This document shows, one piece after another, positions 52,718-58,465 of a stretch of DNA of 64,000 nt (position 1 is its first letter; each line of letters begins with the position of its first letter). Both the position numbers and the translations under genes were made by a program. The notes beneath the pieces are model-generated. The model did not search any database, was not told the origin of the DNA, and saw nothing but the letters and a program-made list of their open reading frames with translations. The stretch lies in the sequence record PQ464590.1, one strand, 5' to 3'.

Positions 52718-53158
52718 TTATTTCACTAGTTCGTACTTTTCACCGAGTTTCACTGCTTCGCGAACAAATTCAATGAAATCGTAAGTAATACCACGAAGAT
52801 CAGTGACTAGTGATTCTTGGAAAAATGCGTCCTCACCAACAGTACTGTCCAGTGTAACTACTGCACCGTCTTTATCACCGTCCGCTGCTAGGGTGATAAC
52901 AATCTGTGCTGCGTCTACATCGTAGTTCACGATGGCGTTTTCAGTAGTTACCATTGCATAACCAGGTACTTTAGAATCTTTGCGGTACGCACCACGAAGA
53001 ATCATTAGTGAGTTGATTACTTTGACACTGTTCACATCATCATATAGGACGTGGAACATGTAATCATTCTCCTGAAAGTTTTCTTCAGTGACATCGATAG
53101 TACGGCCTGGATTCTGGAAGAAATCAGTTTGTAGTAGGTCGTGAATTAGTTCTTTCAT
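52718..53158 (-). CDS. EEExFQxST-module family protein
   Basis: VGEDAFFQESLVTDL. Confidence 0.8.
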   Translation of the reverse strand: MKELIHDLLQTDFFQNPGRTIDVTEENFQENDYMFHVLYDDVNSVKVINSLMILRGAYRKDSKVPGYAMVTTENAIVNYDVDAAQIVITLAADGDKDGAVVTLDSTVGEDAFFQESLVTDLRGITYDFIEFVREAVKLGEKYELVK

Positions 53159-53337
53159 TTCGTGTTCCTTGTGTATTCTTTCATTTTACGATTCGCAAAG
53201 AATCGTGTTAAATCATCGCTTCTTGTATCTAACGTGAAAGTACCGTAATAGGTACTCCCACATTGATCACAGAAAGTTCTGGACTGATAATCGTATTCAC
53301 GATTACATTCAGTGCAGTATTTCTTGGTTTGCATCAT
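53155..53337 (-). CDS. small Zn-ribbon protein
   Basis: CTEC-x11-CDQC. Confidence 0.7.
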   Translation of the reverse strand: MMQTKKYCTECNREYDYQSRTFCDQCGSTYYGTFTLDTRSDDLTRFFANRKMKEYTRNTK

Positions 53338-53696
53338 ACCACCGTGATTTTACGCTTGTCAAGACGGGCTTTCTCTTTTTGTTTGTCAGTACGGGTATCT
53401 TGTAACTGATTCACAACATCTTTTAGTACTTGAACATCTACAGTAGTGTCCATGTACTGGTATGCACCTACATTGAAAATGTACTTCAACGCGATCCATA
53501 CACGCTTGTACCAATAAGCCCTAGGATCAAGACGCGTACTGATTAGGCACTGACCAAGATTCCCGTCACTGTAATCAGTTCCAAAATCCCATTGTGCAAT
53601 ATGCACAACGTGGTCAGTACTGTCTCCGCACTCACAAGTTATGATGAACTCTTGCGATTGGTCTACCCATTCGGCTTCATTTTTTTCTTTAGACAT
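53334..53696 (-). CDS. hypothetical protein
   Basis: IITCECG...H; start moved to MSKEK. Confidence 0.75.
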   Translation of the reverse strand: MSKEKNEAEWVDQSQEFIITCECGDSTDHVVHIAQWDFGTDYSDGNLGQCLISTRLDPRAYWYKRVWIALKYIFNVGAYQYMDTTVDVQVLKDVVNQLQDTRTDKQKEKARLDKRKITVV

Positions 53697-53738
53697 ATCA
53701 TTCCTTATGTAAGATAATAACATCCCCTTTGGAGGATG

Positions 53739-53993
53739 TCAACTTGTTTTTGGATCAAATGGAATATATGCGTATTCCATGTATCGTACTTCAACACCAG
53801 GCAGTTGTGAAGCGATTTCTTCAGCGACAGCACGATTTGCATGGTACTGCCAAACACCGTTTCGTTTCGCTCGCATAAACTCATTGTCAGTACAGATCCA
53901 AAACGAATGCAATACTACTTTGCTGGTGGGTGAAGGTTCTTTGAATTGTTCTGAATCGTAATATTCAAAAATCCCAGGATACTTTCTGGTCAC
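53739..53993 (-). CDS. hypothetical protein
   Basis: 84 aa. Confidence 0.7.
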   Translation of the reverse strand: MTRKYPGIFEYYDSEQFKEPSPTSKVVLHSFWICTDNEFMRAKRNGVWQYHANRAVAEEIASQLPGVEVRYMEYAYIPFDPKTS

Positions 53994-54207
53994 TAAATTT
54001 ACTCCTGTATTCTTGTAGTACCGTTCTCATGTACTTTAAATGTAACATTGCAGTACTGTTTCGTGAAAACCAACTACAATCCTTACAATCATCACGAAAC
54101 GTAGGGAACGCAAATTGTGGCTCATTGTGCGGGTATGTGGTTAAGTGGGTTAATCTGACTCCACTTTTCATAGTCGCTCCACATTTACTACATTTCTTTC
54201 TTTGCAT
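53965..54207 (-). CDS. MqsA/YgiT-like Zn-ribbon array member
   Basis: CSKC...CKDC; helix VLQEYRSKF. Confidence 0.7.
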   Translation of the reverse strand: MQRKKCSKCGATMKSGVRLTHLTTYPHNEPQFAFPTFRDDCKDCSWFSRNSTAMLHLKYMRTVLQEYRSKFSDQKVSWDF

Positions 54208-54433
54208 TGTGTATCTTCCCCATTAGATTTTTGAACACATCTAGGTAATACAATGTGTAAAAATTGGCTGACGTGTATGTTATATGGTTTGAACAATGTA
54301 CACATTCACCATATAATTTCGGAACTTCAGCAATCATCATCTCGTCAGTACAAAAGAATTGTGCAGGTTTATATACTAATTTCATCTCAATCATGAGTTC
54401 TTTTCTACAATATGGGCAGTTTGACAGTATCAT
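54188..54433 (-). CDS. MqsA/YgiT-like Zn-ribbon array member
   Basis: CPYC...LYGECVHC. Confidence 0.7.
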   Translation of the reverse strand: MILSNCPYCRKELMIEMKLVYKPAQFFCTDEMMIAEVPKLYGECVHCSNHITYTSANFYTLYYLDVFKNLMGKIHNAKKEM

Positions 54434-54699
54434 AGTTTCTCGAATTTCTGGAAGTACTTCAAGAATATAGTATGAACATGAAGATTCATTATGCGTTCAC
54501 CTTCAGTCCTGAACTCTTTACCACAGTTTTCACACTCATGGTAATGTCTCGGAATTGAGCGAATCCCACCAACAATAATAGCACTGGTCGGTCGAAGCGA
54601 GCTATACGTCATGCCTACGATATTACATTCAGGACATTGTTCATGCTCATCGTTATGTTTATTCTTCACTTCGTGCAACCTTCCAGTAATAACTACCAA
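54430..54699 (-). CDS. MqsA/YgiT-like Zn-ribbon array member
   Basis: CPEC...HECENCGKEF; LKYFQKF. Confidence 0.7.
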   Translation of the reverse strand: MVVITGRLHEVKNKHNDEHEQCPECNIVGMTYSSLRPTSAIIVGGIRSIPRHYHECENCGKEFRTEGERIMNLHVHTIFLKYFQKFEKL

Positions 54700-54874
54700 T
54701 AACCCGATTCATAGTGCTATTATAGAACCGATCCAAATAGTTGTGCGTATCTACCTTCTTACAATGGTAACACATCTTATAACGCATTGGTTGACATGGG
54801 ATTGCAGAACCATTAGTGTTTTCAAACATACTAATTTGATTAGGTGGATTACCGTTACAGTACTTGCATGTCAT
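54659..54874 (-). CDS. MqsA/YgiT-like Zn-ribbon array member
   Basis: CKYC...CYHC; RFYN..VIGSYYWKV. Confidence 0.7.
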   Translation of the reverse strand: MTCKYCNGNPPNQISMFENTNGSAIPCQPMRYKMCYHCKKVDTHNYLDRFYNSTMNRVIGSYYWKVARSEE

Positions 54875-55080
54875 TTACTGTCTACCTTTCTATAGTACTC
54901 GTACATAACACGAGATGTGTGGGTGTTGAAGAACCTATCGGTATCATCGTGGCGGCACGTTCGGTAATGGAATGGCATCGGACGTTCTTTATCCATTTTG
55001 AATATTGATAATTGAAGTTTGTTGCCACATTCTTTACACGTACTCGCAGTTGTTGTCATTGAATTTCCTTCTATATTCAA
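54871..55080 (-). CDS. Zn-ribbon array member
   Basis: CKEC...CRH; RFFN..VMYEYYRKV. Confidence 0.7.
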   Translation of the reverse strand: MNIEGNSMTTTASTCKECGNKLQLSIFKMDKERPMPFHYRTCRHDDTDRFFNTHTSRVMYEYYRKVDSK

Positions 55081-55252
55081 CCATCACGTCAGCAACGCGA
55101 TTACTGTAAAACAAATCAGAATCTTCAACCATAAATGCTTTCTTACAATTAGTACATTCATGATACCACAAAGGCTCACGAATTACACTAATACGTGTTA
55201 ACCTGAATTTAGGAACTACATGCGAACTACATTTATCACACGAACTTATCAT
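55034..55252 (-). CDS. Zn-ribbon array member
   Basis: CDKC...HECTNC; VMVEYRRKF. Confidence 0.7.
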   Translation of the reverse strand: MISSCDKCSSHVVPKFRLTRISVIREPLWYHECTNCKKAFMVEDSDLFYSNRVADVMVEYRRKFNDNNCEYV

Positions 55253-55457
55253 AATATTTGTCCCATACTATTCTGAAGTGTTTGTTGATGAACATCTCAT
55301 GACATCCAGCACTATCAATGCCACAATTATAACAGTTATTCTCTAAGAACGGAATATTACCAATCACCATACAAACTTTGATTGAACTAGCAGTACCGCC
55401 ACATATTAGGCAATCCGTCTTGGTGGAATTTTTTACTATACTCATTGAATACCACAC
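55236..55457 (-). CDS. Zn-ribbon array member
   Basis: CLIC...CYNC; VWDKYYDKF. Confidence 0.7.
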   Translation of the reverse strand: MWYSMSIVKNSTKTDCLICGGTASSIKVCMVIGNIPFLENNCYNCGIDSAGCHEMFINKHFRIVWDKYYDKFV

Positions 55458-55644
55458 TTATGTTGTTATAGAAAAATCGTGGATCTTCATTAGTTCCAGT
55501 AATACGATGGTTACATTTACTACAAACATTACACGGCATAAAGAACTTGAATTGACCATGTTCCATCTGCATAGTGAATATTACGTGCTGGAATTGATAA
55601 TCAGAGTTTATTAGACACATCGAATTTGGCTCCGTACACGGCAA
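55387..55644 (-). CDS. Zn-ribbon array member
   Basis: CNVCSKC; VFNEYSKKF; start uncertain. Confidence 0.65.
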   Translation of the reverse strand: MPCTEPNSMCLINSDYQFQHVIFTMQMEHGQFKFFMPCNVCSKCNHRITGTNEDPRFFYNNISVVFNEYSKKFHQDGLPNMWRYC

Positions 55645-55834
55645 GTAAGTGCAATGTGAAGTTCTCTATTGCAATGGACTGTTTCTTATCCATACAATGA
55701 TGACATACATCACATATGAATCGAGGGAGAGTAATGTGAGTGTTCTCTCCATTAATTTCTGTAATGAAACGTTTTAGTACTGGGGAACCAGTACATTCTA
55801 TACATCTAGCACTATACACTCTTCCCACTTGCAA
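55601..55834 (-). CDS. MqsA/YgiT-like Zn-ribbon array member
   Basis: CIEC-x26-CDVC; LLAVYGAKF. Confidence 0.7.
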   Translation of the reverse strand: MQVGRVYSARCIECTGSPVLKRFITEINGENTHITLPRFICDVCHHCMDKKQSIAIENFTLHLLAVYGAKFDVSNKL

Positions 55835-56024
55835 TTTTCCTCGAATATACTCTCGTCAAATTCAACGTATGAATCAGATAGAAGTTAGAGTACGGGGCTT
55901 CATCGAACGTCATACACACTGGACACTTCAATGACGGCACGTATAGTGGGATGCGGACACCATCAGTGTTTATCCAATAGCTCCTAAGTGCTGTTAGTTG
56001 TTCTGAACCACATTTACATTTCAT
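55812..56024 (-). CDS. MqsA/YgiT-like Zn-ribbon array member
   Basis: MKCKCG...VPSLKCPVC; TRVYSRKI. Confidence 0.7.
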   Translation of the reverse strand: MKCKCGSEQLTALRSYWINTDGVRIPLYVPSLKCPVCMTFDEAPYSNFYLIHTLNLTRVYSRKIASGKSV

Positions 56025-56250
56025 GTTTAGCCCTTATTCGTTTGTATATGTTGAATAGTGTTGTTTCGATCAACACATCATGTTCGTTATAATAAAATGC
56101 ATTACAAGTAGTACATGTATGAAAGGGGAATGGTTGCAATGTTAAACCAATAGGATAATCCCCTATCATATGATGGAATTCAGTACTGCCACAATGAAGA
56201 CATGGTTCTAATTCAACATATACACGCTTGTCAAAAGTGTACTTGTGCAT
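56014..56250 (-). CDS. Zn-ribbon array member
   Basis: CLHC...HTCTTC; LFNIYKRI. Confidence 0.7.
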   Translation of the reverse strand: MHKYTFDKRVYVELEPCLHCGSTEFHHMIGDYPIGLTLQPFPFHTCTTCNAFYYNEHDVLIETTLFNIYKRIRAKHEM

Positions 56251-57175
56251 CAGGTGAAGCCTTATATAGCTCTTTTGCCATATCAATGATTTCATCACGC
56301 ATGTGGATTTTATTTACCCATTCTTCAGGAATGCCATCTAAGCCGTAATAAGCACCTGCGATTTGACCCGTAACGGCAGCTACTGTGTCTGCATCGTCGC
56401 CTAGGTTCGCAGCTAACAGTACTGCCTCCTTGAAGGAATGAGTCATTTGGAAGCACCACAATGCAGCTTCAAGCGTATCAACACAGTAACCAGTACTCTT
56501 GATATCATCACGCTTCTTAGTAAGGTAAGAACCTTCTAGAACTTTTTTGATATCAGGATCGGTAATCCCATACATGCTAACAGGATATGCATGGAAGTCA
56601 AGACATGTTTGCTTGTCTTCAAGATGGAATAAACGGTTCAAAATAACACCTAAGCCAACACATGCATCAGTCGCAGTAGTGTACGCGTGGGTAGTTTCTG
56701 AACTTTTACGAAGATTATAGAGTAGTGTAGTGTACTCTTCACTAAACGCTTCTTCAGTACTACCAAAGATAGCAACTGGAGCTAAACGCATAATGGAGCC
56801 ATTACCACAACTCAAGAAATCATCGTTATGTACAACAGTACCGTATTTGATGAACTCACGAATAGCGGTAGCAGTACTAACGCCAATGTCAAAACACTGA
56901 CCATTACTACTCATGTATCCATTTTGATACCATTCAACATAGTTCCGAAGTTGATCCTGTACGTTGAAACCTTCACTGATGAGGGATTCAGCTAAGCACA
57001 GTGCCATGCTGGTATCGTCAGTCCATTCACCTGGATTCAGATTGAACGCACCACCACCAACCATATCGGTCAGTACTGGGTACGTGTCACGATCTTTAAA
57101 TTCCAGTGTAGTGCCAATAGCATCACCTACCGCAAGACCAACTAATGCACCAATTGCTTTATTTTGAATACTCAT
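56231..57175 (-). CDS. ADP-ribosylglycohydrolase (DraG/ARH family)
   Basis: GLAVGDAIG...GEWTDDTSMAL...GNGSIMRLAP...LGDDADTVAAVTGQIAGA. Confidence 0.95.
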   Translation of the reverse strand: MSIQNKAIGALVGLAVGDAIGTTLEFKDRDTYPVLTDMVGGGAFNLNPGEWTDDTSMALCLAESLISEGFNVQDQLRNYVEWYQNGYMSSNGQCFDIGVSTATAIREFIKYGTVVHNDDFLSCGNGSIMRLAPVAIFGSTEEAFSEEYTTLLYNLRKSSETTHAYTTATDACVGLGVILNRLFHLEDKQTCLDFHAYPVSMYGITDPDIKKVLEGSYLTKKRDDIKSTGYCVDTLEAALWCFQMTHSFKEAVLLAANLGDDADTVAAVTGQIAGAYYGLDGIPEEWVNKIHMRDEIIDMAKELYKASPDAQVHF

Positions 57176-57417
57176 TTGAACTTCCCTCTGTATTGTTGAA
57201 ATGTTTTACGATACACAGAACCAACGAAATGCGATTCTTCGGATTGCATCAGACCACCTAGACATTTTCCAGAACATTGGTGACGAAGTAGGAAAAATCG
57301 AATACTTCTTGGATCTGATTGGAACATCTTCATTGCAGTTAATCTAGCTTTGGGAACTAGAACGAAATTACATATTGGACACTTCATTACTTCCATTCGC
57401 CAATCTCCGATTGTCAA
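57172..57417 (-). CDS. Zn-ribbon array member
   Basis: MKCPIC...HQCSGKC; TFQQYRGKF. Confidence 0.65.
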   Translation of the reverse strand: MTIGDWRMEVMKCPICNFVLVPKARLTAMKMFQSDPRSIRFFLLRHQCSGKCLGGLMQSEESHFVGSVYRKTFQQYRGKFK

Positions 57418-57994: not shown

Positions 57995-58465
57995 TTATTG
58001 CAACGCATCACGAATTAGGTTCAATGTATCAGCGAACCAATCATGACGCTGCTCAAGTTGCACTACTTTACCATGATACACGTAGTAGTGAACAATTGGT
58101 AAAGTACATTCCTTGAGAGCAGTCTTCAGATCATCGTTCTGGACAATCTTTGCTACCATTGCATCTTGTAGTATTTCAAGATCTTCCTCTGTTAAGGAAG
58201 TCACTACTCTGTGAAACTTCTGTCCAACGGATTTGGCAGTACTGCCATGTAATGAACGTAGCTCTTCATGTTTTTTACCAGTGACGTACCAGTAATAAAA
58301 AGCTTCCATACTGTTGAACTTACCATATGGTTCAAAGACGAATGGGGAGTATGCAAAATTAGATAGCATTCTCCCTAAGTGTGTCCGTCCCTTACTATAC
58401 GCGTTGAGGTGCGTATACCCGTCTTCAGAAGGATCATAGTATTGATCTTCTTCGAACTCAAACAT
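57995..58465 (-). CDS. NADAR-like protein (second paralog)
   Basis: LGRMLSNFAYSPF...FNSMEAFYYW...AKSVG; similar to 21082-21522. Confidence 0.6.
   Translation of the reverse strand: MFEFEEDQYYDPSEDGYTHLNAYSKGRTHLGRMLSNFAYSPFVFEPYGKFNSMEAFYYWYVTGKKHEELRSLHGSTAKSVGQKFHRVVTSLTEEDLEILQDAMVAKIVQNDDLKTALKECTLPIVHYYVYHGKVVQLEQRHDWFADTLNLIRDALQ

Follow-up and report, generated by a model that had tools for sequence, protein, structure and literature searches.

Twelve small zinc-ribbon paralogues form a conserved operon around an ADP-ribosylglycohydrolase gene in the jumbo phage Hallingskeid

The 64,000-nucleotide (nt) stretch of DNA analyzed here, referred to as the window, matches Erwinia phage Hallingskeid (PQ464590.1) at 100% identity, its position 53900 corresponding to position 115900 of the record. 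Hallingskeid is a 366-kb jumbo phage whose host is Erwinia aphidicola; its authors assign it to the group 2.2 jumbo phages and give EJP2 as the nearest isolate, with 39.5% genome similarity (PMC11780129). In this study, we investigated an array of small genes whose products mostly carry two CxxC zinc knuckles, and the ADP-ribosylglycohydrolase gene that lies among them. The minus strand carries all genes of the array locus. As an initial annotation had described, eleven consecutive open reading frames (ORFs), each overlapping the next, occupy positions 53965-56298, and a twelfth lies beyond the hydrolase gene at 57172-57417. Overlaps of 4-59 nt are found at every gene junction of the array, and we showed that the locus is a single translationally coupled operon of twelve paralogues around the hydrolase. 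The genes are listed below in the direction of transcription, with the E value at which each member was recovered when its own orthogroup was left out of the family profile (leave-one-out E; lengths in amino acids, aa; pLDDT, predicted local distance difference test).

57172..57396, minus strand: family member; ATG at 57396 with a GGAG Shine-Dalgarno match, the start being the GenBank call (mechanical ORF 57172-57417); leave-one-out E 2e-8
56231..57175, minus strand: ADP-ribosylglycohydrolase, 314 aa, inside the array; PF03747 E 2.3e-67, phrog_6572 E 1e-83
56014..56250, minus strand: family member; leave-one-out E 5e-6
55812..56024, minus strand: family member; leave-one-out E 1e-4, the weakest of the twelve; orthologues 41-87% identical
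55601..55828, minus strand: family member; leave-one-out E 2e-6
55387..55620, minus strand: family member; leave-one-out E 2e-8
55236..55445, minus strand: family member; leave-one-out E 2e-8; GenBank call of only 44 aa, with knuckle 1 cut off
55034..55252, minus strand: family member; leave-one-out E 3e-12; AlphaFold2 pLDDT 73.7
54871..55059, minus strand: family member; AAGGA Shine-Dalgarno match; leave-one-out E 8e-9; GenBank call truncated, 41 aa
54659..54874, minus strand: family member; recovered in the leave-one-out test
54430..54669, minus strand: family member; GTG start with an AAGG match; leave-one-out E 1e-11; relatives of 79 aa; GenBank call truncated, 60 aa
54188..54433, minus strand: family member; AlphaFold2 pLDDT 77.8, with strands at residues 12-25, 32-44 and 50-52 and a helix at 56-80
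53965..54207, minus strand: family member; leave-one-out E 7e-12; GenBank retains just a 29-aa fragment
53739..53993, minus strand: conserved 84-aa gene, not a member, forming the downstream bound of the variable slot; phrog_13902, with an EJP2 orthologue and 76-94% identity in relatives

When starts are placed by a Shine-Dalgarno match and by retention of the first knuckle, the members measure 62-81 aa instead of 70-94, so the 70-90 aa given in the initial annotation fits the ORFs and is too long for the likely proteins. Shine-Dalgarno matches precede most of these starts. The GenBank record truncates or misses 5 of the 12 member genes, and the family alignment indicates where the true starts must lie.

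Several lines of evidence place the twelve proteins in one family. Pairwise phmmer comparison connects seven members, and a profile of these seven, searched against the 844 six-frame ORF segments of the window, adds three more at E ~1e-5 and matches no segment outside the array. After the orthologues of relatives were added, leave-one-orthogroup-out searches placed each of the twelve members, at E values between 3e-12 and 1e-4, directly behind the 11 groups used for training, and the best unrelated ORF came no closer than E >= 0.057. In 75 members taken from seven arrays, each of the four ligand columns is occupied by Cys at 99-100%, and one C-terminal Lys is invariant (100%); conservation is lower for the Tyr three residues ahead of this Lys (83%), for a Pro that precedes knuckle 2 (76%) and for a Phe with which the helix begins (64%). 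The prediction of a related double-CxxC family is borne out by these results, as is the remark that a few members have variant ligands, which do occur in some members of the Hallingskeid array. The paralogues are only ~25% identical to each other and the array contains no DNA repeats longer than 24 nt; on these grounds a recent duplication of the members was rejected.

Six distinct metagenomic relatives (L005, L006, L007/L008, L009, L010 and L011-L013) share the array in the same order, with orthologues that are largely one-to-one. The upstream-most member (57172..57396), for instance, has orthologues in L005, L006, L010 and L011, and for the member at 54659..54874, L006 and L011 have no clear orthologue, just a weak local match to a paralogue. 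Measured against the relatives, the members have ratios of nonsynonymous to synonymous substitution rates (dN/dS) of 0.1-0.45. Their amino acid identity to the relatives is 30-94%, compared with 81-92% for the hydrolase and 76-97% for the flanking genes, and they evolve two- to six-fold faster than neighbouring genes. We showed that each paralogue is maintained as its own orthologue under purifying selection. Only ~20 small relatives were found among 1.84 billion representative proteins, and among the sequences listed nearly all fit one of the twelve orthogroups.

These comparisons also bear on whether the ORFs are genes at all. No family model of Pfam, NCBIfam, PHROGs or PADLOC was matched at its threshold, with only scattered sub-threshold zinc-finger hits, and this lack of database matches, like the GenBank calls that truncate or miss several members, would fit chance ORFs or a misread generic CxxC pattern. 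That explanation is almost certainly wrong, refuted by the orthologues in six other arrays, their dN/dS of 0.1-0.45 and the recovery of 12/12 members in the leave-one-out test; the Shine-Dalgarno match upstream of most likely starts also speaks against it. We confirmed that the members are genuine, old and conserved genes.

The enzyme inside the array, which the initial annotation had recognized correctly, matches PF03747 over its full length (228 bits against a cutoff of 26.2; profile positions 1-287 of 287). At least 13 related jumbo phages conserve the hydrolase at this locus, and its orthologues in Serratia BF, EJP2, Kaldavass and others are 52-57% identical. In the three neighbourhoods scanned (Kaldavass, Serratia BF and EJP2), the hydrolase and the conserved genes downstream are kept and no family member is found; the slot beside the hydrolase holds unrelated genes, four of them in EJP2. 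Scanning IMG/VR with the hydrolase yielded no relative. The enzyme is the ancestral element of the locus, and the array is a later addition that surrounds it. Because the arrays are collinear with largely one-to-one orthologues, the members are under purifying selection and the three related phages scanned lack them, the family is not a fast-turnover library; it is an old expansion, confined to the Hallingskeid lineage of the group 2.2 jumbo phages and located in a variable slot. The suggestion that the array is a diversified library does not fit these observations.

One explanation of the arrangement is that the small proteins are accessory subunits that steer or regulate the embedded hydrolase toward different ADP-ribosylated substrates. 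Members lie on both sides of the hydrolase gene in every array found, joined to it by overlapping stop and start codons, and the invariant Lys and Tyr common to all members could be read in the same way. Because the hydrolase is conserved without the family in the three scanned phages, we regard such a role as highly improbable, and an obligate functional link between hydrolase and family was likewise considered unlikely.

AlphaFold2 models of two members predict a knuckle, a long β-hairpin, a second knuckle, a short strand and a long helix. The general design of a member is a four-ligand zinc ribbon with knuckles 20-33 residues apart, separated by the β-hairpin, and a long C-terminal helix that ends in a near-invariant Tyr-x-x-Lys. 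Paralogues diverge from one another most in the hairpin and in the short strand that follows knuckle 2.

The initial annotation had likened the family to the N-terminal, toxin-binding domain of the antitoxin MqsA (MqsA-N) without its helix-turn-helix (HTH) domain, and had proposed profile and structure searches as a check. We compared the family profile by hhalign with an alignment of 28 MqsA proteins; E. coli K-12 MqsA was fetched by the accession given in PMC5535158. The family aligned with MqsA-N at 92.6-95.5% probability over ~50 columns, extending from knuckle 1 through the hairpin and knuckle 2 into the first part of the helix, and the profile of a single orthogroup, that of the member at 54188..54433, reached 81%. 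Reversed profiles gave at most 0.9%, and two other Cys-rich families of the same phages gave 33% (one knuckle only) and 1.4%. The score of the real alignment, 41.2, was not reached by any of 200 shuffles in which only the Cys columns were fixed (14.0 ± 3.2). When both knuckle motifs were fixed and the other columns shuffled, the scores were 33.9 ± 3.4 and 3 of 150 shuffles reached the real score. Because the knuckle-fixed shuffles keep 33.9 of 41.2, most of the hhalign signal is that of a generic zinc knuckle, and the raw probability of 93-95% was therefore not taken at face value.

No member matches PF15731, TIGR03830 or TIGR03831, either among all 17 NCBIfam families matched at E <= 1 or among the 25 Pfam families listed for 13 proteins, whereas E. 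coli MqsA, as a positive control, scores 188, 147 and 44 bits, respectively. A profile search of the PDB did not return MqsA at E <= 10, and the C2H2 arrays that it did return matched by Cys spacing only. Judged by these models, the family is not part of the curated YgiT/MqsA family. No HTH family was found in the members by the Pfam scans, and the proteins stop after the helix at 62-81 aa; MqsA itself matches HTH_3.

Several points of likeness to MqsA-N (PF15731, TIGR03831) nevertheless stand beside clear differences. Both have four Cys in two knuckles ~30 residues apart, and the element order described for MqsA-N (Brown et al. 2009, PMC2791442), a long β-hairpin between the knuckles, then a short strand and a long helix, agrees with that predicted by the family's models. 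Unlike MqsA, the phage proteins have no HTH domain and no adjoining toxin gene: all ORFs in the array are family members or the hydrolase, no toxin gene lies among them, and no Pfam toxin family was matched by the tested flanking genes. The conserved non-Cys residues of MqsA lack a conserved counterpart in the family, which has its own invariant Tyr-x-x-Lys at the C terminus, outside the aligned part, and which consists of twelve tandem copies in a lytic jumbo phage. The proposal of an MqsA-N architecture without the HTH is thus partly supported by the alignments and predicted models: the outline and element order hold, while the curated models, the PDB profile search and the structure searches do not single out MqsA. 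Remote homology of the family to MqsA-N is possible.

If this homology were real, each member could be an HTH-less MqsA-N-type domain that binds and neutralizes a different RelE/MqsR-superfamily toxin of the host's toxin-antitoxin (TA) defence systems. The hhalign alignment takes in the part of MqsA that contacts the toxin, where the primary interface is made, by β-sheet extension, by the strand that follows knuckle 2 together with the first part of the helix (PMC2791442), and the conserved Phe of the family aligns with the MqsA Phe that is buried in the MqsR interface. The secondary-structure order agrees, the top match in BFVD bears the name MqsA, Erwinia has MqsA-family antitoxins (P0068) and phage orphan antitoxins are known (PMC11825919). 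The generic share of the profile signal, the silence of curated MqsA/YgiT models whose positive controls work and the missing counterparts of invariant non-Cys MqsA residues weigh against such decoys, as do the absence of solved MqsA structures from the Foldseek top 50 and a stable one-to-one orthology that is unlike a diversifying library. On balance we give them only a small chance. The fuller version, in which twelve HTH-less descendants of the MqsA toxin-binding domain would form a multispecific shield against TA-mediated abortive infection and the hydrolase would cover ADP-ribosylating toxins, appears doubtful to the same degree.

A comparable counter-defence protein is AdfN, a NADAR protein that acts against DarTG1 and is an orphan, antitoxin-like phage product (Johannesman et al. 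2025, PMC11825919). AdfN is likewise a phage gene product resembling or derived from the antitoxin half of a TA defence system, but it is an enzyme with demonstrated activity, whereas the zinc-ribbon family has no enzymatic signature. The neighbouring gene at 57995-58465 had been called NADAR-like, and we found no support for this, with no Pfam family at E <= 0.01 and no PDB NADAR chain at E <= 1. Of the anti-toxin island that had been envisaged here, the hydrolase is real and the NADAR-like neighbour lacks support, which leaves the framing weak.

The main rival explanation is that the members are small nucleic-acid-binding regulators, that is, transcription factors or RNA-binding zinc ribbons that each have their own site. 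Iyer et al. (2021, PMC7824862) made this proposal for a lineage-specific expansion of a small zinc ribbon in Bacillus phage G, with ~35 copies. The resemblance to that expansion is one of kind, in that a single jumbo phage genome holds numerous paralogues of a small zinc ribbon; phage G belongs to another phage group and has another host, and in Hallingskeid the copies make up a single collinear operon built around an enzyme gene, with one-to-one conservation among the relatives. The invariant Lys on the C-terminal helix could contact phosphate, and weak fold matches include an RNase P protein as well as zinc-ribbon domains with which serine integrases bind DNA. However, half of the members are near neutral, with a net charge of 0 to +1, none of the known DNA- or RNA-binding zinc-ribbon families reaches its threshold, and recurring sites that could serve as operators were not found in the array. 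We think nucleic-acid binding unlikely, although less so than the decoy or subunit roles. Over the whole family, net charge ranges from near neutral to mildly basic, and a DNA-mimic role was rejected on this ground.

Our best explanation, to which we give about an even chance, is that the members are stoichiometric binders with member-specific partners, most likely serving host takeover or counter-defence. We favour it because the members have no enzymatic signature, their scaffold is constant and the hairpin and strand faces differ between paralogues. Lacking a catalytic signature, they would act stoichiometrically, with the zinc site and helix serving as the constant scaffold, and each member would owe its own partner to the hairpin and to the short strand that follows knuckle 2, probably through pairing of β-sheet edges, the mode seen in MqsA-N. 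Among several possible classes of partner, RelE/MqsR-type toxins would be one.

A number of observations weigh against the binder explanation. The models are only moderately confident (pLDDT 74-78), and Foldseek found nothing significant in the PDB for either of them, with best E values of 0.8-0.9. The top BFVD match, the 70-aa phage protein named MqsA, is also not significant (E 0.045, TM 0.35). Mean identity within orthogroups, by a per-column table, is ~0.5 in the hairpin and ~0.6 in the helix; as substitutions are not focused in the hairpin, there is no clear arms-race signature. Promoter-like sites are not enriched over shuffled sequence. In addition, the annotation of one neighbouring gene as a virion protein leaves room for a structural or packaged role.

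The family also invites comparison with the Lar restriction alleviation proteins (PF14354), which are small zinc ribbons of phages and prophages, and several Lar-type proteins follow the MqsA-named protein among the BFVD matches. The members differ in that all their matches to this family are sub-threshold, with Foldseek E values of 0.07-0.8 and a score of 16.6 bits for the member at 56014..56250 against the Lar_restr_allev cutoff of 28.6. Most small accessory genes in jumbo phages lack an explanation; the twelve found here belong to one family, absent from Pfam, NCBIfam, PHROGs and PADLOC, in which a zinc site and an invariant-Lys helix form the scaffold and the faces vary. If homology to MqsA-N is true, the array would be the first viral case of an antitoxin's toxin-binding domain expanded in tandem, and a ready set in which to study the re-targeting of one small fold. 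Should the likeness have another origin, the locus still offers a clean example of paralogues that are old and have been maintained as an array in a variable slot of the genome.

On the downstream side of the array, a terminator-like hairpin (53741-53718) follows the 84-aa gene at 53739..53993. Next to it, a 129-aa gene (53334-53723, minus strand, two genes downstream of the array) matches the virion structural family phrog_12660 (E 8e-41), so the block mixes virion and accessory genes. The 60-aa double-CxxC protein encoded at 53155-53337 on the minus strand was considered as a member and rejected, as it was never recruited and has its own EJP2 orthologue and its own PHROG; it is a separate, more widely conserved zinc ribbon (phrog_27170) with a near-threshold match to a NOB1-type Pfam family. 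Seven tRNA genes, all on the minus strand, lie between 24857 and 52663 and include a tRNA-Ser(ACU) just downstream of the array gene block. On the upstream side, the gene once called NADAR-like (57995-58465, minus strand) matches only PHROGs of unknown function, numbers 652 and 11222.

Just upstream of the array, an apparently intergenic stretch of ~520 nt is a strongly conserved, covarying candidate for a structured RNA. It is 97-99.7% identical in the metagenomic relatives, whose flanking genes show synonymous divergence (dS) of 0.5-1, 82% identical in EJP2 and 72-76% identical in Serratia BF and Kaldavass. Copies occur in 69 records of group 2.2 jumbo phages (121Q, PBECO4, CBB, GAP32, BF, Yen9-04, XbC2, 7t3, EJP2 and others), where it is mostly unannotated or given inconsistent tiny ORFs. 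Its variable columns show no three-base (codon) periodicity, and there is no shared ORF. RNAalifold on ten phages gave 81 consensus pairs, 21 of them with compensatory double changes; 95.6% of cells were paired, compared with 37-46% when the partners were slid, and the energy z-score against column shuffles was -5.8. The stretch had no match in Rfam 15 at E <= 1. These jumbo phages appear to carry here a large structured RNA that is so far undescribed.

Positions 57993-57964 on the minus strand, at the 5' border of the RNA candidate, match a sigma-70-like promoter (10/12, with an extended -10). A copy of ~40 nt of this stretch is also found after the orthologue of the 146-aa gene in two relatives (L006, 4841-4880; L011, 5193-5224), at a position that corresponds in the window to the region upstream of the tRNA-Ser gene. 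At ~57560-57539, a hairpin followed by a T-run covaries between phages.

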